Below, piece after piece: positions 29,250-64,000 of a stretch of 64,000 bases of DNA. Position 1 is the first letter of the stretch. Each line of letters opens with the position of its first letter. The translations under genes were made by a program, and so were the position numbers. The DNA comes from Pavona decussata (taxonomy: Eukaryota): the NCBI GenBank assembly GCA_977016875.1, contig CDRNST010000018.1, forward strand, positions 1,550,001 through 1,614,000. The letters are read 5' to 3'. The notes below the pieces were generated by a model, which searched no databases, had not been told where the DNA came from, and saw nothing but the letters and a program-made list of their open reading frames with translations.

Positions 29250-32200
29250 CATTATTATTATTATTATTGTTATACATCTATGGATCTTTTTACGCAAGAC
29301 TATCATAAGTGCATTTTTTGCCTTGAAATCAAAGTTGTTCCAGATAAGCTGTATTTTGTCACAGAGAGTGGTTTTCTGAGTGTATAATTTTACTTTTTGG
29401 AATAGGGCTTAAGAACAGGAAAGAACATGTACATGTAGCTTATTGCCTTTCTTTAAAATGCAAGTGGCCTTTGCAAAACAGTAACCATGCAATACTTGAC
29501 TTAGTTTGTTTACTTATTACCATGAGTTGCTTTGCTTGTGCATGTGTTGAATCAGTTTTGTATTAACTATCAGTAAACAACTAGATGTAAATACTTTATT
29601 GAACACTCCCAATGGGCTTTTCAGGTCAATTTACATGATAAAAAAATAGTTAAGCATCAGTTCCTTGGTTCCACTTGTGTTTTAAAGAAAAGTCATAAGC
29701 GTATTTCTTGTTTGTAAAATAGCATTTTGCTCAAAACCTAAATCAGCAACTAAGAGCACTCCATTTGCCAGGACTGCATGGCTGGTACATTCCATTTATA
29801 AATCAACCAGTCCGGTGGCCAATTCTGATAAATCGAAAGAACCCTTAGTTTCTCACATGATAGCCAGTTATGGTTATCTTTTGAAGCTTACTTGCAATAT
29901 CATTTAGAGGATTGTCTCCTCAGAAATGATAATTCATTGGTCATTTTTCTTTTGACGACAGGATGTCTCCAATGCTGGCTATGGAATGGCTTTTACAACA
30001 TGAGAGTGATCCTGATATTGATGAACCTCTGGTGTTTGGAGCAAGGGCTGGTAGGACTCGAAGGAAAAGGAAAGAATTTGTTCCAAATCCCAGGGTAAAT
30101 GTTCCTTAACACCTAAATGACTAACTTTTACTTGTTTACTTCATTCCAAGTTTTTTCTCCTCATGATGTCGTTCTAGTGGCACTTTTGAAACTAGTTCGT
30201 GAACATGTATACATGGAAATAATTAAACACTTCTTGAGTAAATTATACTCTTTTAATGTGGGGACCCTTTCAGTTTTAGCCCTAGCAAAGACTTGACAAG
30301 GTACTTTTATTTCAGCATTATTGTACATGATATATTAATTTTATTGATCCCAATAAAGTCTCTTATATAATAAATTTGCTACTGTTGTTGTTTACCAGGC
30401 TGTAAATAACTTAAAAGAAATGGGTTTTCAAGAGGAAGAAATCCTTATGGCACTTAAAGCAACTGGGAACAACCAAGAAGCAGCTGTAAGTGTTTAAGCT
30501 CTCCAGAAGTACATGTACAGTGGTACACGGTAATATTTTTATGTGTTGATAGTAATGCTGTGCAACTTTCCTTTTGTTAAAAAGAAGTACATCACAAGAA
30601 AGTTTAATCCATTTAAGTTCCAGTACAAGATAAATGACAAGCCACTAGAGGTCACCAATCACGAGAAAGACCTCGGAGTCTACGTTAGTTCCGACTTAAC
30701 ATGGTAAAAGCACACGCTCGAACAGTGCGCTAAGGCAAACAAGTTACTGGGGTTCATACGTAGATGTGCAATGGACGTTCTAAGCTCAAGCACCAGCAGA
30801 ACTCTCTACTTAGCCATCGTACGTCCTGCTCTTGGCTACGTCATGCAAGTGTGGTCTCCGGAAACAAAAGACCTCATAAGATGCATCGAACGTGTCCAGC
30901 GACGTGCCTCAAAGTTTATTTTAGATCTACCCCTCCTACATGTATGTGAGGAAAGCTATAGAGACAGGCTCTTGTCAATTGATATCCTACCTATCTGCTA
31001 TTGGCACGAGTTTTTGGACTTGGTCTTTTTCTTTAAGGCCACCAATGATATTGTTTGTGTATCACATGACGTGCTCCCTGAAGGCATTGTTCCCACACGG
31101 GTTACTAGAGCAAGCGCTAGCAATGCAAAATCTTTCAGACCAAAGAAATGCCGCACTTCTACTTATCAGCACTCTTTTTTTGTAAGAACTTCTAGAACCT
31201 GGAATGCTCTTCCCCTGCAGTTAAGATATGAACATGTAACTCTGAACCAATTTAAATCTCTGCTCTCCTCATACTACAAAAATGCACTTATTTCGCGCTT
31301 CGATATTGAGGAGCCTAGAACCTGGAAATCTGTCTGTTTAAAGTGTAATATGCCACGCAACCTTTTAGAGCCTATTTCGTGTTGTTATTTAAGTTTACTA
31401 TATTTTACTATCTTATTCGAGTGTTCAGAACTTTGTAAATCTTGGGCCCACAGTAACTGGCGCTAGCTGTTGTGGCCACCCTGCCTTAACCCAGTACTTG
31501 TTTATCTTCTGTTTCACGATGTAATGTTCTGATTATAGTTTTAATTTTGAAGGCGAAGTCTAATAAAATAAAATAAAAGTTAATTATAGATCAAGGCAGA
31601 TTTTGCAGTGTGGCTAGGTCGAGAGGGGAGACAGTGGTGTGGCCTCAGGGGGTGTGAACAGATCTGTGCTTCTTGTACAATTTGCATTAGATTCAGCACA
31701 CGTAAAGTTCACCGTTTGAACCAATATGCATGGTGATATGCTTCTGGCATGACTTACATGTATTGATTTTCAGTTTTATATAACAATAGTGAATTGATTA
31801 TTTTTTTTCTTCAGTGTGACTGGTTGTTGGGTGACAGGCAAGGCAGTGTAGAAGATATAAATCAGGGTCTCGATCAGTCAAGGTAAATAAACAAAAACAA
31901 TGTTTTTTTACAGTGAGATCAGATGTGTTTCTTCATTATTCCATGGTTGAATCTTATTCCTTTTGGCTTAAGAGGGGTTAGAGCTGTGTAAATACATGTA
32001 GTGTGCATGCGTCACTTCATCTCTCATGAATTGGTTATCATGCACCATGTTTTTTGTTTGTTTTTCCATTGTATTTCTGCAGTCCATTGTACCAGGCAAT
32101 TATGGAGAATCCTTTAGTTCAACTCAGCCTTAACAATGCCAGAGTATTAGGAGGTCAGTGCATATGTTGTCAAGCCTATTTCTGGGAGGGCATCAAACTG

Positions 32201-32629: not shown

Positions 32630-34249
32630 TGCTGTGGGTAATACTTTAGCTGAGCCTGCTGTCGTTGACTGCTGGCCTTCAAAGTTGCTAGGCAACAGAG
32701 CTTGCCTTTAAAGTGGCATACATGATAGACTGATTTGGTTATTAGGATCTCAAATTTTTTAGGGTTTTTGTATAATAAGTATGCAAGAAGAAGAAGCATA
32801 GAGAGAAGGTGGTCCCTCTGTGATCTCTTCTTTACCCCTCTGCATTCAATTGTTTGTGCTTGATTATATCTCTGATTTTTGGAGAACGAGTGACTCAAAT
32901 ACTCTCTGTTTTCACTCCCCACTACCCCCCCCCCCCACCCCGTTTGCCGTTTTCTTAAAACACAAGACTGACGAAGTATCAAATGTGAAAGTAGCTCAGT
33001 GAATTAAGAAAACAAGGCGGGGCTTTTTAAAAAAAAATTAAAGGAGGCAGTGGAAAGGATTGTTTAAATGTCTTTTTAACGTTTTTGTATGAAAACCATT
33101 GTGAAAGTACTAAACAACATGTAGGAAGAAACAAAAGATGGATCTTGAAACTTGCAAAAATGGGAAAGTTCTCCGCACACTTGTAACATACCGCATGGTC
33201 CTTCATTTGTTTTCTTTTTTTGTTTTTGTTTTTTGTTTTTCAGTTGTGCAAAATGAGAGAAATTTATTTTTTGTATTTATAGGTAAGAATATATTTACAA
33301 TATCTAGTATATTGTTCCTAGAACTTCTTACTGCAATATTTCGGATTGCTATTGTTGTTTTGTTTACAAATGAAATGTTTGTACGTTGTTTGCTGATTTG
33401 CTCCATGATGCACAGTCAAAATGAGAGGTATAGTAAGAGACTGGACTATTAAAGCTATCATTCTACAAAAATTTTATTCAGGTTTATTTTACCAGGATTT
33501 AGTGCCGTTTAGAGCCTATCATTAACACAAGAGTCAACTCCCGCTTTGGGGATACCTGCTGTTGTTGTTGTTGTTTCCTCCTTTTACTACTGCACATACG
33601 GTCTGTGCATCTGGGGATGTCCTGTGAGATTAGCTGTCTTGTACGGCTTATTACTGTACGGGAAATGAAGATCTTTGCAAGGGTTATTGGAATCCACAGA
33701 TAATTAAGGTTCAATTTCGGGGAAAAAATTGCTTAAAAGGGAAGTGTTATGAGGATAATTTGGATTTGCTGTCATTTTAAAAACCTAAAAACCTTTCTCT
33801 ACATGTATTAGTAGAAAGCTTAAAACCACCCCGGTGTACTAAAACTGTCGACGATTGTCTCTGGCTCCGTGGCTGAGCGAGAAGTATCTTGTTATCTTCC
33901 GAGATTTTTTTTTTTTTTTTTGCATCAAGTGGACTAGGACCTATGTGATTTATTTGACGGTTACAAAGGCTGCGATATTTCCTAAGCTGAGTGAGATCCG
34001 CTTATACTGAAAAATGTCCAGTAACTTTTAAAAGTGCGCCAGACCAGATCATTAGTCAGTGTTCCTTTCAATCAGGATTCATTTGATTTCCTTCTCTCGA
34101 TTTTCTAGAATGTGCAGGTATTGTTGCTACCTTTTCACCGAAAAAGATCAAAACTCGTCACGTTTCCCCTTCAATTTGTCACGCAATCGCTTTAGAGTGA
34201 CGTGCTGGTGCGCTCAGATACCCCGTATGAAGTTTCGCGGGCTCGCGCA

Positions 34250-35980
34250 TTTTCTGAGAATTCGATAGCTCGCGGCGCGTACTCCATTCTCGGAATCACA
34301 ACACTCGTACACGCTTGGTTTTCAACGTTGGAGGCTCGTTGTCGAAACTGTCAGGTAAGTATCGGTTGTTTTGATGTTTCTTTAGGCATGGGAATGGTTA
34401 CTTTTCAGTCTAATCGATCAAACAATTGAGTAGTGCGATTGCTGTCCGCAATAAATGCACCAGTATGGCGATACATTGTATCAGAGGATTTAAAGCTCTG
34501 CCTTTCATATTCAAATCAATTTCAATGCCAACAGTTCGAAGCAGATAAGAAAACAGCGTCGCAATATTAGGGAATCTAAACCCGGCAAACTTGAAATGGC
34601 CGATGAGCACGTTGTGTAGAAGCCAGATCGGATTTCTTATCCACGTGCGAACGAAGGAACGAAGATGCGAGGAGAAGTGACTTTTCGTGGCTCGTACCAG
34701 TTTGGCTCTGGATATTGTGGAAAAGTTTCCCAGGGGAGCTACTGTCTGGCCATTCATTTTAAAGGAAACTTGATTTCCTGACAGTGTAGTTGTTGATGAT
34801 GTGTATCAACTGTAGCGCCTACCGGGGAAAAATTAATGCATGTTCATTTAAGTTCATGTTCTCACGCCCTCGTTTTGCTCATTTTGTACGCTTAGATACA
34901 ATCGTTAGCGTTAAGGATCGTTTTGTTCATGATAACGTTTATGGTAAAAAACCAAGCGAAAATTACAAGGTGCAAAGTGTTTTCTTGATACTATTTTATC
35001 TGGGTTTCATTTTGTAGCTTTTTGTGGGGTTTTTCCCTCTCACTTTCTGCAGTAGAAATATCACCCAGTGTTACCGCAAAGTTCATATTTTCCTGTTCAT
35101 ATATTCGGTCGGCTAAATGCAATTGGACTGAACTGACGAGGAACATTTTTAGCGAGTGCCGACGTGTTTGTAAGAGCTTTGGTTTAGTTTTCTACAGTAA
35201 GAAAATCCGTCGCATTACTTTGGAAGAAGAGGATTATAAACCATTTTAGCTAAGTTAGAAACCGAAGAGATGTTTTGCGGTCGAGCTAACAATTCAGAGG
35301 ATCGTTTCTTAAAGATGTTTTTTTGTATGGGAAAAAAAATGAAACGAGAATTACAAGATATGACTTGCTTCTGTTATATTGTTCTCTGTGATTTTTATTT
35401 TGTGAGATGAAATGTCGTGCAAAATTTAATTCCGCTTTCACTTTCTTTGAAACAGAAACTTCAGCAACCCGGAAGAATTCATTAATGTTGATTGATTTCT
35501 AACAATGCTCTTATTTCTCCGCCTTGGAGTAAGATACCCTCCACCGATCATGACATGAACCACCGTTGAGTTTAATATTCCCCACCGTTTTTCAAACCTA
35601 GAATCGATCAACTCGTGCAGTAATGTACGCTGTCAGTTTTGATACATTTGTTTGTAATTTTTTTCTCGGGATCTGAACGAAATTCTTTATTCCGTCCGTA
35701 GAAGGCACGTGCACAGATACCACTTGCAGCAACCTAGATATGTATATTGTCATCCAACACGGATAAGGAAACCTAGTATTGTGATTTAGCTTTTTGTTAC
35801 AGTTACTCCGATTTACAGCTGAATTAGTCCAGAAGGGAATTTGTTAGTATACAAGAAAGCCAGTGGTACCAAAAGCTGTTAAACCAGAAACGGTACGGTA
35901 ATGACTTTCAAGTTTCGATATGACGGAAGCAGACTGATCAACATGTCTGTTTTCAACTTTTTGATTTTGTCTTCAGTAAA
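34250..35980 (+). other. Putative non-coding 5' exon and intron (34355-35976) of BTB gene A; homologous intron 53465-55573 for gene C
   Basis: Donor CAG|GTAAGT at 34354/34355 (CAG|GTAAGG in the paralog) and acceptor ttttgtcttcag|taaaATG four bases before the start codon in both copies. Confidence 0.6.
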
Positions 35981-38536
35981 ATGGCTTTGCAGCACACACC
36001 ACTTGACTTATCCGTGAGTGGAAGAAAGGATCTGGGTGAAGGAAAAGTGACTTACTCATTTAACAAAGACCAGCATGCCAGATTGTTGTTGAGTAACCTT
36101 GCCAAGATGCAGGCAACCGAAGGAGGAATGCTCACTGATGTGGTTGTAAGCACCAAATCGAACGGCCAAGAACCGTTCCATTCCATACTACTCGCAGCTT
36201 GCAGCCCGGTTTTCAAACAGAGTCTTACAGGGAAGCACTTTGATTGCACCTCGGGAGTCATTTCACTGGGCGACATGACTCCAGATCAGCTTAAGGCCTT
36301 CCGCGATTTCTTCTACAAGTCTGAGATTCCTTTAGATGAAGGAATAGTACATGGCCTCCAACGGGTCGCCAGCAGGTACCGCATCGATTCCCTCGCGCAG
36401 TTGTGTGGGCAACGCAGAGATCAGCGGATGTCCGTTTTGTCGAAGCATCACGAAGATGTGTTGTCCCAACTACACGACATGTTCCAAAAATCCGAATTGG
36501 CCACTACGTTTTTGGAAGATAAGGAGTGCGGCGTTCAGTTTACAGTACACGGGCCAATAATCGCAGCAGCTTCTCCGGTGTTGAAAGACATCTTGTCCAA
36601 CGAGTTGTTCGCTCAAGCGGGGACCAAATATCGCCTGAAAGAAATCACATCCAACACGCTGGGGGATCTCATAGAGTACATATATACGGGGGAAGTCACA
36701 ATGGAAGGAGAAAACGTAGTCGATTTGCTAAATGCAGCATGCTGTTACGAAATCCCGTCGCTTGCCGAAGCCTGCTGTGATTGGCTTACGTTGGGGATGA
36801 ATTCGTATAATGCAGTCGGCATTTGGTGGGTCACGCGGGAGACGGATTGTAAATACACCAGCGATCTTCAAAAGGAAGCCAAGAACTTTATTGTGGCCAA
36901 TTTCATCAGCGTCTGCCAAGAAGACGAATTCCTTGAGCTCTTGTGTGAAGACCTGAAAGAAATCATACAGGACGACAATCTTTGCGTAGATGGTGAGGAA
37001 GATGTGTTCTCTGCCGTTGCTACTTGGGTGGAAGCGGACGAAGAAGGCCGCTCATCCTACCTTTGTGATCTCCTGAAATGCGTTCGGCTAGAGAATACAA
37101 GTCTGGAATTTTTGCGTGAAGTGGAAGAAGATCGTCTTGTGAAAAATTCCGTGGGATGCTTGCAAGCTGTTCACGATGCTCGTGCAAAGTTAGCATCTCA
37201 AGAACCCATTGAACGGAGTGCTTTTGATGGAGTTGAGGCAACCGACGTCCAACGTGACAGCATCCCAAGAGTTGAACCATGGCGAGGCGATGAAGAAGAT
37301 GTCAAGAAAATGCTCCTGCAACAGTTCTTGGATTCTCAAGCAGAAATGCCCACCCTGAGGTCAACACATGATAGCGACGATGGTTTGGAGGAATTGACCA
37401 AGCAGACTCCACCTCGGGGCATCAGGAAGAACGGAAACCCTGATATGAGGTTGAGAGACAACAGGCGATCGTCGGGCCTCAATAAGAAGGATGGTTCCCC
37501 AGATATGCGTTTTAGAGTCAACAAAGGAAACAGTCAGAAAGGAGTCGTTGCTACGCGAAAAGAAGGTCCATTGAAAAGAGACGGCACCCCAGATATGCGT
37601 TTTAGAGTCAACAAAGATGCCTTTGGACGCTCATCTCAAGAAAACTCAGCTAAAGCTAAGAGTCCGAACGGAGTCGTTGCTACGCAAGGAGAAGGTCCAT
37701 TGAAAAAAGACGGCACCCCAGATATGCGTTTTAAAGTGAATAAAGGAGCCTTTACGGGGTCATCTTCCCAGAAGAGTGCATCCCAGGTAGAAAGTGTTCC
37801 TCTCAAAAGAGATGGCACGCCAGACATGCGCTTCAGAGTCAACAAAACAGCAGTTGTGAAGTCTCCTTCTCCTGTCGGTACTTCAGGACCTGTGAAACAA
37901 GATGGTACGCCGGACATGCGTTTTGCTGTTAACAAACCATCCCGCAGATCAGCTTCTCCACAAACAAGCAGCTCAATGGCTCAGTCATCCGCTTATGCAG
38001 GCCCTCTGAAGAGGGATGGAACGCCAGACATGAGGTATGCTGCAAACAAGTCACCCCATGCCAGCCCAATGTCCTCAGGGTATTCATCTAGTGGCTCCCC
38101 ATCATCTCTTAGTGGAAGTGTTTCTCGTCCAGGTTCTTATGGCCCACTGAAGAACGATGGTACACCAGACATGAGATATTCTGCAAACAAGTCGGCCAAT
38201 GGCAGCTCTTCCTCATCTGGCAGTTCAAATTACAGCTCCGGATCGTCGTCTTCTCGAAGTAGCTACAGCACTTCAACCTACAGCTCCAGTTCGTCTTCCA
38301 GTGGAAGTAGCTATGGCGGATCAACTTCCTGTGGCCCAGTTAAGCGTGATGGCACTCCTGACATGAGGTATGCTGCAAACAAGTCGGTCTATGGTGGTCC
38401 TTCCTCGTATGGCAGTTCAAGCTACAGCGCTAGATCGTCTTCTTCTGGAAGAAGCTATGGAGGTTCGAGTTCTTGTGGTCCACTTAAGAGCAACGGCACT
38501 CCCGACATGAGATTTGCATCCAATAGACGCAAGTAA
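35981..38536 (+). CDS. BTB-BTB-BACK protein with 10 DGTPDMR motifs and Ser/Gly/Tyr-rich tail (851 aa), putative Cullin-3 adaptor
   Basis: Uninterrupted ORF. BTB1 (DVVV..FHSILLAACSPVF..FFY), BTB2 (FTVHGPIIAAASPVL..LIEYIYTGEV..NVVDLLNAA..L..AC), BACK (FIVANF..EFLEL..LKEIIQDDNL..EEDVFSAVATWV..LLKCVRL); no Kelch repeats. Confidence 0.92.
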   Translation: MALQHTPLDLSVSGRKDLGEGKVTYSFNKDQHARLLLSNLAKMQATEGGMLTDVVVSTKSNGQEPFHSILLAACSPVFKQSLTGKHFDCTSGVISLGDMTPDQLKAFRDFFYKSEIPLDEGIVHGLQRVASRYRIDSLAQLCGQRRDQRMSVLSKHHEDVLSQLHDMFQKSELATTFLEDKECGVQFTVHGPIIAAASPVLKDILSNELFAQAGTKYRLKEITSNTLGDLIEYIYTGEVTMEGENVVDLLNAACCYEIPSLAEACCDWLTLGMNSYNAVGIWWVTRETDCKYTSDLQKEAKNFIVANFISVCQEDEFLELLCEDLKEIIQDDNLCVDGEEDVFSAVATWVEADEEGRSSYLCDLLKCVRLENTSLEFLREVEEDRLVKNSVGCLQAVHDARAKLASQEPIERSAFDGVEATDVQRDSIPRVEPWRGDEEDVKKMLLQQFLDSQAEMPTLRSTHDSDDGLEELTKQTPPRGIRKNGNPDMRLRDNRRSSGLNKKDGSPDMRFRVNKGNSQKGVVATRKEGPLKRDGTPDMRFRVNKDAFGRSSQENSAKAKSPNGVVATQGEGPLKKDGTPDMRFKVNKGAFTGSSSQKSASQVESVPLKRDGTPDMRFRVNKTAVVKSPSPVGTSGPVKQDGTPDMRFAVNKPSRRSASPQTSSSMAQSSAYAGPLKRDGTPDMRYAANKSPHASPMSSGYSSSGSPSSLSGSVSRPGSYGPLKNDGTPDMRYSANKSANGSSSSSGSSNYSSGSSSSRSSYSTSTYSSSSSSSGSSYGGSTSCGPVKRDGTPDMRYAANKSVYGGPSSYGSSSYSARSSSSGRSYGGSSSCGPLKSNGTPDMRFASNRRK

Positions 38537-39431
38537 ACAAGGAATCGCCGGTGCGTTTCCTGACATGTTGGTCAAGAGAAGACAAACGGGTTTCCATTGT
38601 TCCCATTTTCTGATATACGTAATTTCATGTTTTTCATGTTTTCTTGTTGGCATTGTAACCTGAGAAACATTTGTTTCCCCAGAGGTACAATTGCGCTATT
38701 TCATAATGCACGTTAGTATTTTGTATACTGGGAACAGTAGGTACAATGAATATACTCCTATAAAGTCCAAGAACACAAGTCTTGTCATAACTGTTAGGTT
38801 TTAGTTTTTCAACTTCAACGGCCACTTGATATATGCTGTGGTCTTAAGGTTTTTGTAAGCGATGCAAATGTTGTTTTTTATACTGTATCTCAGAATAGGT
38901 ATTAATCGGTGATTTTGCGGACAACTTAAAATAGTTACAAAATTGAAAAATGTTGTTCTTCCCTAGCTACATATTGTATTACGTTATCGTTCAAGCGCAT
39001 GCTTCGGTCCACTTCGTGTTAAGTAACGACCTAGTGGCATGTGAAAAAAAAGTTAAAAAGGTTGTATAAGATTTGGTAGCAAGTAATAGAACCATCGTTG
39101 TTGTTTGAAGCTTGTCTGTTCATTGTGTAGCCGCAGTAACAAGTTGAGTCATTAACAAGGTATCCAGGTATCACACGATGCCATGGTCGGAGGCTTATCT
39201 CCTTTGCATTCTTTCTCATCCACTGTTTTTTTCAGGTCGGTTTCTGTTGTCTTTACGCAGACCACTTCAATTTTTTGCACAACTTTCCCACACGTAGACG
39301 AATACTGCAAGTTAAAAAAGAAGAAGGGAAGATTTCAGTAAAGCGTTGAGCTTTTGTAGCAGTAGTTCCCTTTCCAAGCGAGTGTCAGATGCAAACAGAA
39401 AACTTCCGGGAAGAGGGAGAAAAAAATACAT

Positions 39432-39584
39432 NNNNNNNNNNNNNNNNNNNNNNNNNNNNNNNNNNNNNNNNNNNNNNNNNNNNNNNNNNNNNNNNNNNNN
39501 NNNNNNNNNNNNNNNNNNNNNNNNNNNNNNNNNNNNNNNNNNNNNNNNNNNNNNNNNNNNNNNNNNNNNNNNNNNNNNNNNNNN
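39432..39584. other. Assembly gap (153 N); other gaps at 43423-43566 (144 N) and 60935-61105 (171 N)
   Basis: N runs. Confidence 1.
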
Positions 39585-40788
39585 TTTCGTTCGACTGCTA
39601 GGCAGACATTTTAGGGTTTGGTTAGAGCGGAATGGGTATCGGCTTACAGCGACAACCTCGAACTGGGAAAGAAACCTCATAAAAACATAGCCATCCACGA
39701 CACATACGGTTGCCGTCTGTGGTTCAAAAACGTCTGTGCTTAACTTTAGCATCCCATTTACGCGGTAGTCGCGACTATCCGCAACTCCTATCCGACTTAA
39801 TCTTCAGTATGATCTTTACTTTGAAGCGACAGGAAGTTTAAGCTGTATGTGTATTTAGCTAGTGAAACACATGCATGTCACATAAAACTTCGTTACTACT
39901 TTTAACGTTTAAACTGGTATTTATATTAAAAGACGGGTTTTCTCAAGCATATAACAGCAACAACGAACGATAACGATAGGCTCATAAAACCTGGTCTCGG
40001 CCGTTCTCATTTGAGGATTTTCGTTTCTAAATGGCAACGAAGTTAGCTGTTAAATGGTAGCGCCATTCGCCTATGCCCACTAGCATCCCACCGCTGTAGA
40101 GGCCTTAGCGAGTTCACAGGGATTTCGCTGTGAACATTGGCTTATGCAAGGCCATTCAGCCTGTAAGAGCCCATCGATGAACGGCACCAGGTCTTCAACC
40201 TGTGGAGAGCGCTTGACCTCCGCACGCACGAGCAGCTTCCTGTACTTAGTGGCGCTGCCGCCTGTCCAGTTTTTGCCTCTACAACGTCTTTCCGATCATC
40301 TCCGGTGGCTTCTTCACTGAGACCACTATCTCTACTAGATGGAATGAAAGACAAAGTTGCCTCGCTGAATACTAGTAATGCCAATACAAGGTTAAATTTT
40401 GGTTCGATTATTGAGAAGAACTAAAAGCATGTTATGAGAGCAACTACTTTATACTTTCTTTGAAAAAAGCTGTTGATAGAACGCCGCATTTTGATAGATT
40501 TTTCTAACTCAGATCAGAGAAGACAGAAGACTCGAGAAATGGCGGAAAAACACATGAAAACAAGGCAGTTTTCTTTGGAAAGCCGCTGCCTGGTTAGCAT
40601 GAATTTTTGCTTAATTTTTCTCATCTGTCATTCAGGGCACTACCTCATTCGCGTTAACATTCAACATAACATCATGTTGCGTTAACATTTCTTTTTTACT
40701 TATTTAACTGTTTGTGAATTTGTCAACAATGACTGAGGCAAGTGCCTCGGTTTGCCTCGTACTGGCTACGGCCCTGGAGTCAATAGGA

Positions 40789-40881
40789 CGTCAAATTGTG
40801 AAAAGCACAGTGAAGAAAATAACTGGTATCAGCGAGACCTAGGGACAAGTTAGGTTGAATTTTTATGCAGTCGGAAGAGTT
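40789..40881 (+). pseudogene. 3'-terminal remnant of the GPCR gene (second copy at ~62679-62771)
   Basis: cgtcaaattgtgaaaagcacagtgaagaaaataactggtatcagcgagacctag..gtcggaagagtt matches the last codons (RQIVKSTVKKI.GI.E.*) and 3' flank of the GPCR at 43328-43420. Confidence 0.8.
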
Positions 40882-40983
40882 AAAAAAGAAAGGTTAAAGA
40901 AGAGAGAGAAATTTTACAAACTACCATTTAATAAAGTGTCAGTTTGGAAAGCCAGGAAATACATTTGCTGATTAAAGGAAGCC

Positions 40984-41132
40984 GGTTGTTGGTTCTCGTC
41001 CCTGCTCCGTTCGTCTTTTTCCGGGTACTCCGGTTTTCCTCCCTCCACAAAAACCAACATTTCCAAATTCCAATTCGACCTGGAAACAGTGGACGAATAG
41101 CCACTCTGTGGATGTGCCTCTGAAATTCCCAT

Positions 41133-41163
<31 letters not shown>

Positions 41164-41166
41164 TTT
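40984..41166 (+). mobile_element. 5'-truncated SINE with (ATTT)n tail (copy at ~62874-63048)
   Basis: Conserved SINE core ccgggtactccggttttcctccc and ATTT tail; the homologous site at ~43615-43630 is empty. Confidence 0.8.
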
Positions 41167-41200
41167 GAAAACAACGAATTTATTTGCGTAATACATAGTA

Positions 41201-41298
41201 TAGTCTGAAATGTCAGCCGTCTCTTCCCCCTAACCCACAGGGGGCGCCCCCTGTGGGTTAGGGGGGGGGGGGGGGGAGACGGCTGACATTTCAGACTA
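41201..41298. mobile_element. 98-bp palindromic MITE with 9-bp TSD (copy 63083-63180)
   Basis: TAGTCTGAAATGTCAGCCGTCTC ... GAGACGGCTGACATTTCAGACTA with TACATAGTA on both sides; absent at the homologous site ~43650. Confidence 0.85.
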
Positions 41299-42451
41299 TA
41301 CATAGTACTGATACTGGAGATTCTAGTCAGTTGACTCTGGCTACAACAAGCGGAGTACTGACTGAAGGACAATCCGTTTATATAGGTGGATTACGTTACC
41401 GCCATGGTCGTGGTCAAAACAAAAGAAAATTTGCTCACATAGTTTGCATAAAAATGGCAGTGAACTCCCAGAGGAGAACATTTATTGTTCCTGTACACCA
41501 ACATTGCCGCCATGACGTTAAATGCAAACCATCGATTAAGAAAAGTGAATTTTTTTTTGCCCTTTCTTTAACCGTTGCATTTTCGTTCAGCTTGCAATTG
41601 TAAACTGACAGGTACTAAACACAATGAGCTGTAGTTTTCTTCTTCTTCGAAAAGGAAGGTGAGACCAATGCATAAATTAAAGAAATGAAATTAAAGATGG
41701 ACGTTAATTCTTGGACCGGCATCTTGCTTAATTGTGTCACCGTGAGTCATATGCAATAGTTTTTTTGCGAATTAGCATTGGCTGTATTATTTTGATCTGC
41801 AGCGGCTACGGGGCTTCAAAGTGGATGTTTTTCAAGGTATATATATTTTTTTTAGCAGGTGAACCGAACAAATTTTACTAATGTTACAAAACAGCGTCAA
41901 TTTTATACAAAGCTATAAGTGTTTGGGCTCTGCTGGAAGCTGTTGAAGATTTATTCATGAGCTGAAAGGTAATATTATCCTGGGCTGAGAAATAAACAGA
42001 CATACAACTGGCGTCAGTGATCATTTTGTCACTATTCATTAAATGCTTCATGATGGAGTGTCTGTAATATATTATTTATCACAATGCTAAATATCACGCT
42101 TTTCAGTTGTAGTCAAGCTAACTCGTTGCTAACCTGGGGCGCTTTTCATGAAGCCAAAATTTTCAGTTCGACTAGTTGAAATGCAAATAGTACGCGCGGA
42201 TATCAGACGGAAAGTTCCTGTAACAAATGGACGACCCTCTGAGGTACTTCACTTTTTCCATTCAAATCGGTCAGAAGGGAAATTTTCGTCCCATTTGCAC
42301 AAAATTTTCATCTCCACTTTCTTGTCTTCTTGTGTCATGACGTAAGTTTTTTTTTTATCTACCAATGATACTGAAAGTTGGGAAATCGCGAATGTAAAAT
42401 CGCCAAAATTGAAATCAAAGGACTGATCGTTCTGTATGATTCTAGTTCGAC

Positions 42452-43381
42452 ATGGCTAGCCAGTTTTGCGATGAAAAGTTGCAGGCACTGGTACAACTCG
42501 TTCACCAGCATTCAACATTCATGTTCACTCTTTGTGTTTTAAACTTTATCTTCTCGCTCGTGGCGACTCTTGGAAATTTTCTTGTTATTCGTGCCATTTG
42601 GAAAGCTCCATCGATGCCAGCTAATTTGAAGAAGACTCTCTTAAGCCTCGCGTTTTCAGATCTTGCTGTTGGACTGTTTTCACAGCTAATGCACGGTGTC
42701 ATAATGGCGGTGATGTGGAATATGGCGGCGAATCAAAATTATAACTTCGGCTTCCTTTGTCCAACAGTTTTAACAATTTGTTATTTACCTATGTTTTTTC
42801 TCGCTTGTGCATCGTTCCTTAATATAACCGTCATTGCTGTCGATAGACTTCTCGCCGTTTCTCTTCATCTGCGATATCATGAACTTGTCACTTCAAGACG
42901 GGTCGTTGTCGCTTTGGTGTCTTTATGGCTGACAAGTGGTATTGCTTCCTCTATAATCATTTCATTTACAAAGCACTATGGCATGGTAGCAGCGGCCGTA
43001 GGATGGATTGGATTTCTCTTGACAACTGTGGCATATATTCGTATTTTCAAAGTTGTGAGATATCACCAGAACCAAATACAAAGTCAACTTCAACAGGCGA
43101 ATCATCAAGAAATGGAACTACACCGAGAGAAGAAGTCCGCCTTTAATGCTCTGTTTATTTATGTTGTTTTTGTTCTCTGTTATCTTCCATATTTTTGCGT
43201 TTTAATGTTTCATGAAAATAACGGTCCTCGAAGTTCTCTTTTGGCACCATATGTCGCTACACATTTCTTGATTCTTCTCAATTCTTCGTTGAATCCCCTC
43301 GTGTATTGTTGGCGATATCGAGAAATTCGTCAAATTGTGAAAAGCACAGTAAAGAAAATATTGGGAATCACCGAGGCGTAG
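42452..43381 (+). CDS. Intronless class A (rhodopsin-like) GPCR, adenosine/melanocortin-receptor-like, 309 aa
   Basis: Seven hydrophobic segments with GN (TM1), SLAFSDL (TM2), IAVDRL (TM3), CYLPY (TM6), NSSLNPLVY (TM7) and a basic helix 8. Confidence 0.93.
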   Translation: MASQFCDEKLQALVQLVHQHSTFMFTLCVLNFIFSLVATLGNFLVIRAIWKAPSMPANLKKTLLSLAFSDLAVGLFSQLMHGVIMAVMWNMAANQNYNFGFLCPTVLTICYLPMFFLACASFLNITVIAVDRLLAVSLHLRYHELVTSRRVVVALVSLWLTSGIASSIIISFTKHYGMVAAAVGWIGFLLTTVAYIRIFKVVRYHQNQIQSQLQQANHQEMELHREKKSAFNALFIYVVFVLCYLPYFCVLMFHENNGPRSSLLAPYVATHFLILLNSSLNPLVYCWRYREIRQIVKSTVKKILGITEA

Positions 43382-48521: not shown

Positions 48522-49015
48522 AATAATTAACCTAAATTTCGGCGCGAAATTTCAGCGCTAATTTATAATTTCACATGTGAAATTACAAAATTGCTATGGC
48601 AACATCTCAGTGCCAAGATGGCGTCCAGGTTTAAAGATGTTACGGATGAAAGAAGTTACAGAAAACCTAAATACGCGAAAGATCACAATTAACTGGGTGA
48701 GAGTTTCTGAGAACAGGCCGATGAAAATGGCCTTGAGAAAAACCCTGAGACGGTTCGTCCTGAGCAGTTGGATAAAGTACTCGAGCGGTTTTTTGCCTGC
48801 GTGTGTAAACAAGACGCAACCGACCACGTAATTTGTCAAAACGCGCGCGAAATTATGTCCTAATTTCACTCGTTACCATTTGATTACTAAACACATAGAT
48901 TCCATTTTGCCGGGCGTCTGTACTCTGATAATGCACAGATGACGTCAAAACGTGGTGAGAACAAAGAAGTACGCTACGAGCCGCAGGCGAGTAGCGTGAC
49001 TGATGTTCTCACAAG

Positions 49016-49712
49016 CAACGCTGACTCTTGCTCACCCTCTGAAGAGGGATGGAACGCCAGACATGCGGTATGCTGCAAAGAAGTATTCTGCTCTCCCACT
49101 TCTCATTCTAGCAGCCCTGGAGCAGCCTCAGTGTCACAGATGTCCTCTTCTAGAACTCCAAGTGGCCCTTTAAAGAGAGATGGGACGCCAGACATGAGGT
49201 ATGCTGTAAAAAAGTCACCCCATGCCAGCCCAGTATTCTCAGGGTATTCATCTAGTGGCTCTATGTCATCTCTTAGTGGAAGTGTTTCTCGTCCAGGTTC
49301 TTATGGCCCACTATAAAGAACGACGGTACACCAGACATGAGGTATTCTGCAAACAAACCGGCCAATGGCAGTTCTTCGTCATCTAGCAGTTCACATTACA
49401 GCTCCGGATCGTCGTCTTCTCGAAGTAGCTACAGCAGTTCCACCAACAGCTCCAGTTCGTCTTCTAGTGGAAGTAGCTATGGCGGATCAACTTCCTGTGG
49501 CCCAGTTAAGCGTGATGGTACTCCTGACATGAGGTATGCTGCAAACAAGTCGGTATATGGTGGTCCTTCCTCGTATGGCAGTTCAAGCTAGACCAAGCTA
49601 CAGCGCTGGATCGTCTTCTTCTGGAAGAAGCTATGGAGGGTCGAGTTCTTGTGGTCCACTTAAGAGCGATGGCACTCCCCACATGAGATTTGCAGCCAAC
49701 AGACGCAAGTAA
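49016..49712 (+). pseudogene. 5'-truncated, frameshifted third copy of the BTB-DGTPDMR gene (tail only, 5 motifs)
   Basis: Matches the 3' end and 3' flank of genes A and C; a 1-bp insertion gives TAA at 49314-49316 and a 10-bp insertion (gaccaagcta) gives TAG at 49589-49591; ends FAANRRK*. Confidence 0.88.
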
Positions 49713-54531: not shown

Positions 54532-55216
54532 TACTCAAGAAAATTAAGGCATGTTACTCAAAAAATCAAGGGGGTGGTCAATCTTCTGAAGATTTAGCTG
54601 TAACGTCGTAAGACTTTGGCAGCATAATATGCTTACAAATGTCAACATATTGACATACACAACTTATGCAAATTGGGTCACTTGACCTGTTGCGGCCGAA
54701 ACATTTATGAAAACATTTGAGAAAAAATGGCACCACTTTTTATTGCCTCCTGGAGGCTGCCAGTAGTTTTAAAACTTTGCCACTGTCAGGCACTTCATTT
54801 CTGTGCTCGGGTTTTTTGAATATTCCTTTAATTTTGAAAATAAACGGCATTTTTTACTAGTACCCAGTCCCTCCAAAGTAAAATTGGCCGTTTATTTTCA
54901 AAATTGAGGGAATATTTAAAAAGGCCCGGGCACAGGAATAAAGTGACTAACAGTGGTAACGTTTTAAAACTACAGCCAACCCCTGGGAGGCATTAAAAAG
55001 TGGTGCCATTTTTGCTCAAAAGTTTTCTTCAATTTTGCATCCGCGAAAGGTCACGTGACCTAATTTGCATAAGTTCTTTATGTCAATATGTTAACATTTG
55101 TAAGCATATTATGCTGCCAAAGTCTTACGACGTTACAGCTAAATCTTCAGAAGATAGACCACCCCCTTGCTTTTTGAGTAAATAACTTAAGACCCATGCC
55201 TTAATTTTCTTGAGTA
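54532..55216. mobile_element. 685-bp foldback element with TA ends (Tc1/mariner-type MITE) in the 5' intron of BTB gene C
   Basis: TACTCAAGAAAATTAAGGCATG ... CATGCCTTAATTTTCTTGAGTA; inverted similarity extends ~300 bp; absent from the homologous site in unit A (~35615). Confidence 0.88.
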
Positions 55217-55577
55217 GGGTAATGTACGCTGTCAGTTTTGACACATTTCAGTTGTAATTTTTCTCGGGATATGAACGAAATCCTCTTTTCCGTCCGTGAA
55301 CTACCACTTGCAGCAGCCCAAATATGTATATTGTCATCCAAGACGGATATAAGAAACCTAGTATTATGATTCAGCTTTTTGTTACATTACAAAGTGGTTA
55401 CTCTGATTTAAAGCTGAATTAGTCCAGATGGGTATTTGTTAGTGAACAAGAAAGCCAGTGGCACGAAAAGCTGTTAAACCAGAAACCGGGTATGGTAATG
55501 ACTTTCAACTTTCGATATGACGGAAGCAGACTGATTAACATGTCTGTTTTCAACTTTTTGATTTTGTCTTCAGTAAA

Positions 55578-58478
55578 ATGGCTTTGCAGCACACACCAAT
55601 TGACTTACCCGTGAGTGGAAGAAAGGATCTGGGTGAAGGAAAAGTGATTTACTCATTTAACAAAGACCAGCATGCCAGATTGTTGTTGAGTAACCTTGCC
55701 AAGATGCAGGCAACCGAAGGAGGAACGCTCACTGATGTGGTTGTAAGCACCAAATCGAACGACCAAGAACCGTTCCATTCCATACTGCTCGCAGCTCGCA
55801 GCTCGGTTTTCAAGCAGAGTCTTACAGGGAAGCACTTTGATTGCACCTCGGGAGTCATTTCAGTGGGCGACATGACTCCAGATCAGCTTAAGGCCTTCCG
55901 CGATTTCTTCTACAAGTCTGAGATTCCTTTAGACGAAGGAATAGTAGATGATCATGACCTCCGACGGTTCGCCAGCAGGTACCGCATCGACTCCCTCGCA
56001 CAGCTGTGTGGGCAACGCAGAGATCAACGGATGTCCGTTTTGTCGAAGCATCACGAAGATGTGTTGTCTCAACTACACGACATGTTCCAAAAATCCGAGT
56101 TGGCCACTACATTGTTGGAAGATAAGGAGGGCGGCGCTCAGTTTACAGTACACGGGCCAATAATCGCAGCAGCTTCTCCGGTGTTGAAAGACATCTTGTC
56201 CAATGACTTGTTCGCTCAAGCGGGGACCAAATATCGCCTGAAAGAGGTCACATCCAACGCGCTGGGGGATCTCATAGAGTACATATACACAGGTGAAGTC
56301 ACACTGGAAGCAGAAAACGTGGTTGATTTGTTAAATGCAGCATGCTGTTATGAAATCCCGTCGCTTGCCGGAGCCTGCTGTGATTGGCTAACCTGGAGGA
56401 TGACTTCGTATAATGCAGTCGGCATTTGGTTGGTCACGCGTAAGACGGATAGTGAATACACCAGCGATCTTCAAAAGGAAGCCAAGAACTTTATTGTGGC
56501 CAATTTCATCAGCGTCTGCCATGAAGATGAATTCCTCGAGCTCAAGTGTGAAGACCTGAAAGAAATTATACAGGACTACAATCTTTGCGTAGACGGTGGG
56601 GAAGATGTGTTCTCTGCCGTTGCTACTTGGGTTGAAGAGGACGAAGAAGGCCGCTCATCCTACTTTTGTGATCTCCTGAAATGCGTTCGGCTAGAGAATA
56701 CAAGTCTGGAATTTTTGCGTAAAGTGGAAGGAGATCGTCTTGTGAAAAATTGCGTGGGATGCTTGCAAGCTGTTCACGATGCTCGTGCAAAGTTAGCATC
56801 TCAAGAACCCATTGAACGGAGTGCTTTTGATGGAGTTGAGGCAACCGACGTCCAACGTGACAGCATCCCAAGAGTTGAACCATGGCGAGGCGATCACAAA
56901 GAAATCGAAAGAAAGATGCTGCAAGAGTTGCTAGATTTTCAAGCAGAAATGCCCACTTTGAGGCTAACACATGACAGTGACGATGGTGTGAAGGATTTGA
57001 CCAAGCAGACCCCACCTTGGGGCATCAGTAAGAACGAAAACCCTGATTTGAGGCTGAGAGAAAACAGGCGATCGTTGGGCCTCAATAAGAAGGATGGTTC
57101 CCCAGATATGCGCTTTAGAGTCAACAAACATACCCTGCAGAAAGGAGTCGTTGCTACGCGAAAAGAAGGTCCATTGAAAAGAGACGGCACCCCAGATATG
57201 CGTTTTAGAGTCAACAGAGATACCAGTCAGAAAGGAGTCGTTGCTGCGCGAAAAGAAGGTCCATTGAAAAGAGACGGCACCCCAGATATGCGCTTTAGAG
57301 TCAACAAAGATACCAGGCAGAAAGGAGTCGTTGCTACGCGAAAAGAAGGTCCATTTAAAGCAGACGGCACCCCAGATATGCGTTTTAAAGTGAACAAAGA
57401 AGCCTTTAGGCGGTCATCTTCCCAAAAGAGTGCATCCCAGGTAGAAAGTGTTCCTCTCAAAAGAGATGGCACGCCAGACATGCGCTTCAGAGTCAACAAA
57501 ACAACAGCTGCGAAGTCTCCTTCTCCTGTCAGTGCTCCAGGGCCTGTGAAACAAGATGGTACACCGGACATGCGTTTTGCTGTTAACAAACCATCCTGCA
57601 GATCAGCTTCTCCACAAAGAAGCAGCTCAGTGGCTCAGTCATCCGCTTATGCAGGCCCTGTGAAGAGGGATGGAACGCCAGACATGAGGTATGCTGTAAA
57701 CAAGTCACCTAATGCCAGCCCAATGTCCTCAGGGTATTCATCTAGTGGCTCTCTTTTATCTCTAAGTGGAAGTGTTTCCCGTTCAGGTTCTTATGGCCCA
57801 CTGAAGAGAGACGGTACACCAGACATGAGGTATTCTGCAAACAAGTCGGCCAATGGCAGTTCTTCCTCATCTGGCAGTTCAAATTACAGCTCCGGATCGT
57901 CGTTTTCTCGAAGTAGCTACAGCAGTTCAACCTACAGCTCCAATTCGCCTTCCAGTGGAAGTAGCTATGGGGTATCAACTTTCTGTGGCCCACTTAAGCG
58001 TGATGGCACTCCTGACATGAGGTATGCTGCAAACAGGTCGGTCTATGGTGGTCCTTCCTCGTATGGCAGTTCAAGCTACAGCGCTGGATCGTCTTTTTCT
58101 GGAATTAGCTATGGAGGGGCGAGTTCTTGTGGTCCACTTAAGAGCGATGGAACTCCCGACATGAGGTATGCTGCAAACAGGTCGTTCTATGGTGGTCCTT
58201 CCTCGTATGGCGATTCAAGCTACAGCGCTGGATCGTCTTTTTCTGGAATTAGCTATGGAGGGTCGAGTTCTTGTGGTCCACTTAAGCGTGATGGTACTCC
58301 TGACATGAGGTATGCTGCAAACAGGTCGGTCTATGGTGGTCCTCCCTCGTATGGCAGTTCAAGCTACAGCGCTGGATCGTCGTTTTCTGCAAGTAGCTAT
58401 GGTGGGTCGAGTTCTTGTGGTCCACTTAAGAAGGATGGCACTCCCGACATGAGATTTGCAGCCAACAGACGCAAGTAA
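55578..58478 (+). CDS. BTB-BTB-BACK protein with 13 DGTPDMR motifs and Ser/Gly/Tyr-rich tail (966 aa), paralog of 35981-38536
   Basis: Uninterrupted ORF collinear with gene A; extra 90-nt units (57138, 57228, 57318) and 144-nt units (57984, 58128, 58272, partial 58416). Confidence 0.92.
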   Translation: MALQHTPIDLPVSGRKDLGEGKVIYSFNKDQHARLLLSNLAKMQATEGGTLTDVVVSTKSNDQEPFHSILLAARSSVFKQSLTGKHFDCTSGVISVGDMTPDQLKAFRDFFYKSEIPLDEGIVDDHDLRRFASRYRIDSLAQLCGQRRDQRMSVLSKHHEDVLSQLHDMFQKSELATTLLEDKEGGAQFTVHGPIIAAASPVLKDILSNDLFAQAGTKYRLKEVTSNALGDLIEYIYTGEVTLEAENVVDLLNAACCYEIPSLAGACCDWLTWRMTSYNAVGIWLVTRKTDSEYTSDLQKEAKNFIVANFISVCHEDEFLELKCEDLKEIIQDYNLCVDGGEDVFSAVATWVEEDEEGRSSYFCDLLKCVRLENTSLEFLRKVEGDRLVKNCVGCLQAVHDARAKLASQEPIERSAFDGVEATDVQRDSIPRVEPWRGDHKEIERKMLQELLDFQAEMPTLRLTHDSDDGVKDLTKQTPPWGISKNENPDLRLRENRRSLGLNKKDGSPDMRFRVNKHTLQKGVVATRKEGPLKRDGTPDMRFRVNRDTSQKGVVAARKEGPLKRDGTPDMRFRVNKDTRQKGVVATRKEGPFKADGTPDMRFKVNKEAFRRSSSQKSASQVESVPLKRDGTPDMRFRVNKTTAAKSPSPVSAPGPVKQDGTPDMRFAVNKPSCRSASPQRSSSVAQSSAYAGPVKRDGTPDMRYAVNKSPNASPMSSGYSSSGSLLSLSGSVSRSGSYGPLKRDGTPDMRYSANKSANGSSSSSGSSNYSSGSSFSRSSYSSSTYSSNSPSSGSSYGVSTFCGPLKRDGTPDMRYAANRSVYGGPSSYGSSSYSAGSSFSGISYGGASSCGPLKSDGTPDMRYAANRSFYGGPSSYGDSSYSAGSSFSGISYGGSSSCGPLKRDGTPDMRYAANRSVYGGPPSYGSSSYSAGSSFSASSYGGSSSCGPLKKDGTPDMRFAANRRK

Positions 58479-63700: not shown

Positions 63701-64000
63701 AAAGTGGATGTTTTTCAAGGTATATATATTTTTTTTAGCAGGTGAACCGAACAAATTTTACTAATGTTACAAAACAGCGTCAATTTTATACAAAGCTATA
63801 AGTGTTTGGGCTCTGCTGGAAGCTGTTGAAGATTTATTCATGAGCTGAAAGGTAATATTATCCTGGGCTGAGAAATAAACAGACATACAACTGGCGTCAG
63901 TGATCATTTTTTCACTATTCATTAAATGCTTCATGATGGAGTGTCTGTAATATATTATTTATCACAATGCTAAATATCACGCTTTTCAGTTGTAGTCAAG

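Follow-up and report, generated by a model that had tools for sequence, protein, structure and literature searches.

Two genes of the coral Pavona decussata raise the question of what a short basic motif, repeated along the disordered tail of a BTB-BACK protein, might be, where else it occurs and what it may bind. Both lie in a 64,000-nucleotide stretch of contig CDRNST010000018.1 (the window; assembly GCA_977016875.1, positions 1,550,001 to 1,614,000 of the forward strand). Gene A (35981..38536, + strand) is a single-ORF coding sequence for 851 amino acids, composed of BTB, BTB and BACK domains and a motif-bearing tail, and its paralogue gene B (55578..58478, + strand; 966 amino acids) has the same architecture, the two proteins being 85% identical in a pairwise alignment. 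In gene A, Pfam identifies BTB (PF00651, E 1.8e-32, two stretches) followed by BACK (PF07707, E 9.9e-23, residues 293-381), all within residues 1-381. The first BTB domain, at approximately residues 17-142 (36029..36406, + strand), is covered by the second Pfam BTB stretch and matches the BTB domains of BCL6 and KLHL26 in the PDB. The second BTB (residues 166-268) and the BACK domain (together 36476..37123, + strand) are of the KLHL type in both Pfam and PDB searches, and their best solved relatives are KLHL3, KEAP1 and KBTBD2 (E 3e-28 to 6e-21). This part of the protein thus resembles the KLHL/KBTBD family of BTB-BACK-Kelch CUL3 adaptors, and gene A presumably binds CUL3 as other family members do. 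In contrast to these adaptors, it has an additional N-terminal BTB domain and lacks the Kelch propeller (no Kelch family at E<=1 in Pfam), in place of which the C-terminal 440 residues form a disordered motif array with no credible Pfam match. In the AF2 model, residues 1-410 are confidently folded (pLDDT ~90), whereas residues 412-851 are modelled as disordered, with a tail pLDDT below 50 from which the motifs stand out as islands of 57-69.

The tail of gene A (37415..38536, + strand) is basic and S/G/Y-rich, and contains ten motif copies, all on the + strand. These begin with a degenerate copy, NGNPDMRL (37415..37465), and a second copy, KKDGSPDMRF (37475..37525), and continue with copies at 37565..37615, 37694..37744, 37796..37846, 37886..37936, 38000..38050, 38141..38191 and 38333..38383, up to a terminal SNGTPDMRF copy (38477..38527), which is followed only by RK and the stop. 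A regular-expression scan places the motif Gly codons at 37433, 37493, 37583, 37712, 37814, 37904, 38018, 38159, 38351 and 38495. The tail of gene B (57018..58478, + strand) has 13 copies, 12 found by the same kind of scan (Gly codons at 57096, 57186, 57276, 57366, 57468, 57558, 57672, 57813, 58005, 58149, 58293 and 58437) and one, a degenerate first copy NENPDLR near 57036, by pairwise alignment. A sequence-only reading of this locus had described every copy but the first as keeping K..DG(T/S)PDMR, an aromatic residue and N(K/R). This holds in general, but the last copy of gene A has N in place of D, and the first copy is indeed degenerate in both genes, without D, without T and with L for the aromatic residue. 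The same reading correctly noted that a basic tail (net charge +36 in gene A, +40 in gene B) is joined to an acidic BTB-BACK half (-36 and -28, respectively), and that both proteins terminate in NRRK.

The consensus of the window copies is GP[LV]K[RK]DGTPDMR[FY]xxN[KR], with K, G, P, D, M, R and N invariant across the aligned units of genes A and B. Unit alignments give a core of K-x-[DN]-G-[TS]-P-D-[MKR]-R-[FY]-x-x-N-[KR], usually preceded by G-P, and each window copy scores 33-54 bits against the motif profile described below. Across 60 coral homologues the spacers are variable and the motif columns invariant. The pattern goes far beyond chance: all 35 matches to the exact DGTPDMR[FY] codon pattern in the 602-Mb genome fall in this one gene cluster, and the reversed control pattern has none in the same genome. 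Because the invariant residues of genes A and B are spread over all synonymous codons (for example, four for Thr, four for Pro, four for Arg and three for Gly), the similarity of the copies reflects selection on the motif peptide and not recent DNA copying; the copies are held by purifying selection.

Several described domains were considered as possible identities of the motif, which is covered by no model in Pfam or NCBIfam and has no solved structure in a PDB profile search (best E 6.9). The AT-hook (PF02178), to which it had been likened, is likewise a short basic peptide, recurs along disordered regions and has been added to many chromatin proteins. The comparison fails on the sequence itself: the tails of genes A and B contain no GRP and no RGR core, gene A has no PF02178 match in Pfam, and, unlike the AT-hook, the motif has two invariant Asp residues, a Gly-Thr-Pro and an aromatic residue. 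The PBCV-specific basic adaptor domain (PF08789) is closer in its manner of use, as it is small and basic, occurs both in viruses and in Bacteroidota, and is found joined to enzymes, protein kinases among them; proteins of PBCV-1 annotated with it stand in a table of DNA-binding proteins (PMC3281028). The two even occur in the same bacterial mini-proteins, three of which exceed the PF08789 cut-off of 20.4 bits (L044, 20.7; L046, 23.7; P0285, 21.4 bits). The PF08789 signature, of the type G-x-R-G-G-x-Y-Y...K-x-Y-V, is unlike the motif, and Pfam finds no PF08789 match in gene A or its tail. The DUF5122/delta-60 beta-propeller repeat (PF17164) matches weakly over the motif in two relatives (E 0.002-0.004); we rejected this identity, as the score is 18 bits against a curated cut-off of 27, the copies have no regular 36-residue period and the AF2 model contains no propeller. 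No paper on the motif was found by its substrings in the searchable literature, where three occurrences of DGTPDRR, in the unrelated TRPV4 C-terminus, were judged to be chance. In the ESM Atlas the only matches were Bacteroidota clusters without names, together with a ‘MXKDX pentapeptide’ label that had been assigned automatically to a different, low-complexity part.

The sequence-only reading was right to suppose that strings of this kind exist in uncharacterised proteins of bacteria and microbial eukaryotes: word, profile and DNA-pattern searches all find them, outside the coral gene family and joined to many unrelated domains. A word search with residues 495-660 of the gene A tail gave 212 matches, among them an RBR ligase and proteins of Branchiostoma that lack BTB (E down to 7e-79). 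When a motif profile of 22 positions was run against 1.84 billion protein representatives, 1538 protein clusters were found at E<=1e-3 and 668 at <=1e-10, with the best E-values reaching 1e-239. The eukaryotic carriers include cnidarians, the brachiopod Lingula, amphioxus, hemichordates, rotifers, a tardigrade, Daphnia, chytrid fungi, oomycetes and unnamed protists, and in corals, amphioxus and protists the motif comes with S/Y/G-rich spacers. A Lingula protein has a collinear double BTB and the same motif tail, which speaks against the earlier proposal of a coral-specific capture onto a metazoan gene. Elsewhere the motif is fused to kinases, RBR and BTB ubiquitin ligases, nucleases of the GIY-YIG, XPG and AP types, HMG boxes, WWE, PARP and PBZ domains, and GTPases, among them the membrane GTPases RHD3 and AIG1; nucleases make up ~26 of the ~65 carriers with Pfam domains among the motif proteins listed. 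No Pfam matches were found in the ORF-dense flanks of two genes combining GIY-YIG with the motif (L182, L267). The motif stands at the N- or C-terminus of its partner enzymes, and among the best 150 of the 1538 clusters the arrays are C-terminal in 52 and N-terminal in 20. In genes A and B and nearly all of 120 homologues only 2-6 residues follow the last copy, and the distance from the last motif Gly to the protein end is 11-13 residues in nearly all coral and amphioxus proteins.

In bacteria, at least 120 genome stretches carry the DNA pattern KxDGTPDMR[FY], exceeding by at least 100-fold a chance expectation of ~1, which was estimated for uniform base composition. Among the matches listed, 116 are named Bacteroidota, three have non-Bacteroidota MAG labels and one (L113) is a chance match; a ‘Rhizobium’ MAG was discarded as a non-Bacteroidota carrier, as it groups with Chitinophaga. 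The carriers are small proteins with signal peptides, and a 97-residue Chitinophaga protein matches the coral tail in BLASTP at E=6e-15. They have no evident operon partner, since even the commonest neighbour family occurs at only 11 of 118 loci. The pattern is also found on 27 viral contigs and at least 120 metagenome contigs. The phage carriers are tape-measure-like and neck-type proteins. PHROGs put a name to just two regions in them, the tape measure in L155 and the neck (tail completion/Neck1) in L159, and a search of GenBank phages with a tape-measure-like query gave two distant records only, with no clue to the host. In the tape-measure-like proteins, hydrophobic, transmembrane-like segments follow the motif at a distance of a few tens of residues, and in L166 and L172 it closes a membrane-like protein. 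In many of the bacterial carriers and in every phage carrier the motif occurs once or twice, with no S/Y-rich spacer; one bacterial subtype has YGNSYS-type runs after the motif. As the same 17-residue unit is found in coral tails, secreted mini-proteins of Bacteroidota, phage tail proteins and eukaryotic enzymes, it looks like a previously unannotated and undescribed targeting module.

The explanation that we favour, while giving it slightly less than an even chance, is that the array is an ancient and promiscuous terminal adaptor that replaces the Kelch propeller and forms the putative multivalent, polyanion-binding end of a CUL3 adaptor. In this model, units of ~17 residues with the consensus GPxK[KR]DGTPD[MKR]R[FY]KxN[KR] are set in a disordered, S/G/Y-rich basic region, the protein stopping right after the last of them. 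Standing where a KLHL-type BTB-BACK protein would carry its Kelch propeller, the array of the coral genes would provide a CUL3 ubiquitin-ligase adaptor with its targeting end. Each copy is predicted to form a small turn, with a beta-bridge around K-x-D-G-T and one helical turn on D-M-R, which would display the Lys, the Arg and the aromatic residue, and many copies together could give a multivalent grip on a polyanionic ligand. The ligase, or elsewhere a kinase, nuclease or PARP, would thereby be brought to that ligand, most likely nucleic acid or chromatin and possibly poly(ADP-ribose). Judging from its fusion partners, binding to a polyanion such as nucleic acid is the most likely function of the motif: the GIY-YIG, XPG and AP-type nucleases, HMG box, PBZ, WWE and PARP all lean this way. 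The presence of PF08789 in several of the bacterial motif proteins is a further link, to a module associated with DNA. Against nucleic acid stand the motif's net charge of only ~+3 and its two invariant Asp residues, unlike simple basic nucleic-acid-binding patches, and the common fusions to kinases, GTPases and ligases, which do not point to DNA. The bacterial carriers, having signal peptides, would moreover act outside the cytoplasm, where DNA is not an obvious ligand. The model as a whole is weakened by the AF2 confidence at the motifs, only 57-69, and by the lack of a conserved bacterial gene neighbour hinting at function.

The export of every bacterial carrier suggests instead a membrane or envelope anchor, whose basic-aromatic face would bind acidic phospholipids or lipopolysaccharide and so tether periplasmic mini-proteins, phage tape-measure proteins and eukaryotic enzymes. 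The proximity of the phage motifs to transmembrane-like segments, their position at the end of the membrane-like proteins L166 and L172, the terminal polybasic location typical of lipid anchors and the RHD3 and AIG1 partners fit such a role. We nevertheless regard it as unlikely, as an invariant D-G-T-P-D core is not expected of non-specific lipid binding and nucleases, HMG boxes, PBZ and WWE are not membrane proteins. We consider it improbable to the same degree that the motif serves as a short linear site at which one conserved protein partner docks, or as the substrate site of a modifying enzyme, with arrays recruiting that partner. The unit is SLiM-like in its shortness, disordered context, invariant core and variable spacers, its T-P dipeptide and conserved Arg and Lys could be modified, and fusions to ubiquitin and ADP-ribose enzymes are frequent; but the partner would have to be common to the Bacteroidota periplasm, phage tails and the eukaryotic cytoplasm, the bacteria lack a conserved neighbour gene, and SLiMs are rarely near-identical across domains of life.

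Less likely still are ‘stickers’ in a FUS-like low-complexity S/G/Y region, which would drive self-association or condensates without an external ligand. The predicted disorder of the tail and the S/Y/G-rich spacers of corals, amphioxus, protists and one bacterial subtype agree with this, whereas the carriers with one or two copies and no such spacer do not, and this model would not explain why the acidic turn residues are so strictly conserved. That the animal, bacterial and phage likeness is convergence or chance, and the coral tail a lineage-specific repeat, is highly improbable. The unit has only ~17 residues, so common descent is not provable by phylogeny, but at least 10 positions are shared, including the flanking GP before and N[KR] after, and the profile E-values, the at least 100-fold excess of pattern matches over chance and the empty reversed-pattern control all argue against coincidence.

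Extending the terminal-adaptor reading, we offer more tentatively the possibility that KDGTPDMR[FY] constitutes a ligand-binding mini-domain, new and ancient, whose ligand would be nucleic acid or a related polyanion. It may have passed horizontally between Bacteroidota, the phages of these bacteria and eukaryotes, in part carried by mobile nucleases and retroelements. It would then be a universal ‘address tag’ taking ubiquitin ligases, kinases, PARPs and nucleases to one target, and in corals and other marine invertebrates perhaps part of an antiviral or genome-defence toolkit. If so, a peptide of 17 residues, near letter-identical in soil Bacteroidota, marine phage tails and the enzymes of corals, amphioxus and protists, would have been missed by annotation. 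Its ligand would annotate more than 1500 protein clusters at once, explain the Kelch-propeller substitute of a cnidarian and brachiopod CUL3 adaptor family and provide a first handle on more than 1000 ‘hypothetical’ mini-proteins of Bacteroidota, and the motif might be a new portable targeting tag of practical use.

Within the window, the copies arose by segmental duplication of ~8-11 kb including flanks, with homology that extends kilobases past the coding sequence (33.9-42.0 kb versus 53.0-63.9 kb). Retroposition, which the intronless coding sequence had been said to fit, is unsupported. Gene A is indeed one ORF from ATG to stop without introns, but no A-tract that could be a poly(A) remnant is present in the 300 nt after its stop, the homology reaches beyond the transcript and the ATG is preceded, at 4 nt, by a splice-acceptor-like sequence. 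A truncated, frameshifted and tail-only remnant of a third copy (48939..49712, + strand) matches gene A 38000-38908 at 91% in blastn and retains 5-6 motif copies over three frames, the last reading DGTPHMRF...NRRK. A run of N is located near 39.4-39.6 kb of the window.

The region 37415-38536 is the 3' portion of a single open reading frame of 851 codons (gene A, 35981-38536, + strand), which has a 966-codon paralogue (gene B) at 55578-58478 (+) whose protein is 85% identical. Both genes are islands of 0.48 G+C in a genome of about 0.37. In the gene A protein, Pfam places two BTB stretches and a BACK domain, all within residues 1-381, and finds no credible domain in the rest; among solved structures, the second BTB and BACK come closest to KLHL3, KEAP1 and KBTBD2, all of them CUL3 substrate adaptors. 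Genes A and B encode putative BTB-BACK adaptors with a novel type of tail, composed of copies of a motif that lacks annotation and is shared across kingdoms. Pattern scans count 10 motif copies in gene A and 12 in gene B, the latter with one extra, degenerate first copy visible in the pairwise alignment with A, and the same scan and alignment show that the paralogues differ by in-frame units of 30 and 48 residues. Alignment of the units yields the consensus GP[LV]K[RK]DGTPDMR[FY]xxN[KR], in which K, G, P, D, M, R and N do not vary. The motif had been described from the sequence alone, and pattern scan and unit alignment agree with that description, with two small corrections: the last copy of A has N-G instead of D-G, and the first copy is degenerate in gene B as well as in gene A. 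The contrast between an acidic BTB-BACK half (net charge -36 in A, -28 in B) and a basic tail (+36 and +40) is borne out, as is the ending NRRK in both proteins.

No Pfam-A or NCBIfam model covers the motif, no solved structure contains it and the string was not found in the literature searched. DGTPDRR in TRPV4 papers is an unrelated seven-letter coincidence, and weak matches of DUF5122 over the motif fall below threshold and do not qualify. The sequence-only reading had likened the motif to an AT-hook, an identity that is ruled out because G-R-P is absent from the tails. Selection acts on the motif as a peptide: over the 22 copies, four synonymous codons are in use at each of the invariant residues Thr, Pro and Arg and three at the invariant Gly, and among 60 coral homologues the spacers vary and the motif columns are invariant. 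A codon-pattern scan for DGTPDMR[FY] in the 602-Mb genome returned 35 exact matches, all 35 in one cluster on the contig of the window (C18), and a reversed control pattern returned 0 in the same genome; a profile search of the genome agrees with the scan. In an AlphaFold2 model of gene A built on the 60 homologues, pLDDT is near 90 over residues 1-410 and below 50 over 412-851, where it rises to 57-69 only in islands that coincide with the motifs. Each modelled island comprises a beta-bridge, from the residue at Gly-4 to the Pro at Gly+2, and after it a single helical turn on D-M-R. This hints, weakly but consistently, at each copy being a small autonomous turn within a disordered chain.

The motif extends beyond the coral family, as the sequence-only reading had suggested for bacteria and microbial eukaryotes: searched for across kingdoms, it was found in other eukaryotes, in Bacteroidota and in phages. 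A word search with tail residues 495-660 retrieved 212 proteins, mostly coral BTB-BACK (Oculina, Porites, Stylophora; Acropora and Montipora are also among the coral sources), together with Branchiostoma proteins that lack BTB, one of which has about 21 copies (E 7e-79), and with a RING-IBR ligase among others. A profile of 106 motif units (A2, 22 positions), run against 1.84 billion representative proteins, matched 1538 clusters at E<=0.001, of which 668 reach <=1e-10 and 68 reach <=1e-30. Partner domains were identified by Pfam in 141 top clusters beyond those already retrieved and in proteins from a second word search. They include protein kinases (14 clusters), IBR/RBR ligases (8 clusters; 10 proteins of the second search), GIY-YIG nucleases (8 clusters; about 21 proteins), HMG boxes (4), AP-type endonucleases of the retroelement type (4 proteins of the second search) and WWE (5 proteins, likewise), as well as PARP, PBZ, XPG_N, GYF, BTB and the GTPases AIG1, RHD3 and URGCP. 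The named animal sources are scleractinian corals, Lingula, three Branchiostoma species, Ptychodera, Saccoglossus, Daphnia, Adineta rotifers and the tardigrade Paramacrobiotus; the others are the chytrids Thoreauomyces and Geranomyces and the oomycetes Aphanomyces and Pythium. Contamination does not account for these occurrences, since several of the sequences come from contigs of chromosome scale. In Lingula, a protein whose double BTB is collinear with that of gene A (28% identity, E 1e-21) has the same motif at its end, and the BTB-tail fusion is therefore no coral invention. Terminal placement of the motif holds as a rule across lineages: the last motif Gly lies 11-13 residues from the protein end in nearly all coral and amphioxus proteins, which typically end in KANRR, and among the best 150 of the 1538 clusters there are 52 non-bacterial C-terminal arrays and 20 arrays beginning within 20 residues of the N-terminus. 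In four proteins from Daphnia and unnamed sources (P0233, P0234, P0314, P0319), an N-terminal motif array is followed by an AP-type endonuclease of the non-LTR-retrotransposon kind.

In prokaryotes, back-translated K-x-D-G-T-P-D-M-R-[FY] was scanned through 185,579 species, one genome each, and gave at least 120 stretches, with about 1 expected by chance on our own estimate for uniform base composition. Among the 120 listed, 116 bear Bacteroidota names (Chitinophaga, Pedobacter, Hymenobacter, Niastella, Elizabethkingia, Riemerella and many metagenome-assembled genomes); L113 is a chance match inside a UDP-glucose dehydrogenase. Assemblies labelled Rhizobium, Caulobacter and Janthinobacterium (L031 from genome G004, L018, L048) bear typical Bacteroidota motif genes, and the 'Rhizobium' label is probably wrong, since the genome collection groups that assembly in one family with Chitinophaga. 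The bacterial carriers are open reading frames of 70-190 codons that encode a signal peptide and a K/T/A-rich linker, with one to three motifs close to the C-terminus. A second type has the motif immediately after the signal peptide and ahead of an S/Y-rich stretch, and several such proteins (L044:6105-6635, L046:2704-3168, P0285) end with PBCV_basic_adap, a domain first described from a chlorella virus, above the Pfam cut-off. The profile is present in 41 of 101 sampled Chitinophaga-family genomes and 9 of 201 phylum-wide, usually as one gene per genome. A word search gave 1408 short relatives, of which the named ones are all 'hypothetical protein' except for one JGI 'DUF2147 family' label, and no Pfam domain was found in the 120 listed; a 97-residue Chitinophaga protein matches the coral tail at E 6e-15. 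Elsewhere in Bacteroidota, the motif lies inside the C-terminal part of an RHS-like protein (L100:712-1659, -) and precedes a small domain resembling HNH, whose score does not reach the Pfam cut-off (L110:1739-2215, -). In IMG/VR the same pattern occurs on 27 contigs, mostly as single copies within large tape-measure-like proteins; by PHROGs, L155 is a tape measure and the carrier L159 has a neck/tail-completion part. Metagenomes contain the pattern on at least 120 contigs, mostly of the Bacteroidota type; others resemble eukaryotic proteins and join the motif to kinase, WWE, GIY-YIG and HMG-box domains. Two GIY-YIG genes with the motif lie on gene-dense contigs (L182, 13.3 kb; L267, 12 kb) whose other long open reading frames, of up to 932 codons, have no Pfam match, and these contigs may belong to an unknown large DNA virus or mobile element.

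The observation of the motif is confirmed and its interpretation partly supported: the idea of a mobile, possibly non-animal module has the support of the distribution, and 17 residues are too few to read the direction of transfer. The eukaryotic spread, over animals, fungi, stramenopiles and high-G+C protists, is compatible with ancient presence and loss, and the limitation to one bacterial phylum and its phages with at least one transfer, in either direction. The presence of the motif on retroelement-type endonucleases and GIY-YIG proteins suggests these as a vehicle of its spread, the AP-type endonuclease fusions of the Daphnia type being a possible one.

The motif is a conserved, terminal, multi-copy module joined to many different enzymes, and in the coral genes it joins a KLHL-type BTB-BACK without its propeller; the coral proteins differ from KLHL-type proteins in having the motif tail in place of that domain. 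In a putative CUL3 adaptor, the tail would serve as the end that selects the target, and the module would bind a common ligand. That this ligand is a polyanion, above all nucleic acid or chromatin, is our tentative preference, held at slightly less than an even chance. It is favoured by the strongly basic array and by the partners: among carriers of 220-700 residues nucleases are the commonest of these, with HMG boxes, PBZ, WWE and PARP beside them. The phage carriers, which are tape-measure and neck proteins, point the same way, as in tailed phages such proteins are located on the route by which the DNA leaves. So does the combination, in single bacterial proteins, of the motif with the PBCV basic adaptor domain; PBCV-1 proteins annotated with this domain appear in a table of DNA-binding proteins (PMC3281028).

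Contrary facts keep the nucleic-acid reading at that grade. The bacterial motif proteins are exported, the two invariant Asp are unexpected in a protein that binds nucleic acid, and the kinase and GTPase partners are uninformative on DNA. Binding to membrane or envelope is an unlikely alternative, and a protein docking or modification site is improbable to the same degree. Less probable still is a condensate sticker without a ligand.

The coral copies arose by segmental duplication. The stretches 33939-42000 and 53052-63883 form a tandem duplication of about 8-11 kb with 88-98% identity, which reaches far past the coding sequence on both sides and includes kilobases of flank. No poly(A) remnant was seen after the gene A stop codon, and a polypyrimidine tract ending in CAG (35957-35980), 4 nt upstream of the ATG, resembles a splice acceptor. 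Retroposition, offered to account for the intronless coding sequence, is unsupported on these three grounds; the coding sequence is indeed a single frame, and given the acceptor-like sequence intronless status is known for it alone, as gene A may have a non-coding upstream exon. The cluster on C18 comprises genes A and B, one intact copy on either side of the window and one broken, tail-only remnant. Of the intact copies, that at about 1,624-1,626 kb (+, near 1,625 kb) has an open frame of 1025 codons, and that at about 1,515-1,518 kb (-, near 1,517 kb; 874 codons) matches strict DGTPDMR[FY] just once and seems to be the most diverged. The remnant of a third copy within the window (48939-49712, +; a 91% match to gene A 38000-38908) has its motif copies spread over three reading frames, the last one mutated (DGTPHMRF), and sits immediately downstream of retroelement-like open reading frames at 45861-48358, which may have caused the loss of its 5' part. 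Frames resembling retrotransposon protein fragments lie at 30771-31466 (+) and 45861-47244 (-), and the G+C of the window peaks at 0.52 in the 46-48 kb stretch. Close downstream of gene A, a run of N at about 39400-39600 marks an assembly gap or masked stretch, and an intron-less frame of 309 codons at 42452-43381 (+), with several hydrophobic segments, is a candidate rhodopsin-type receptor.
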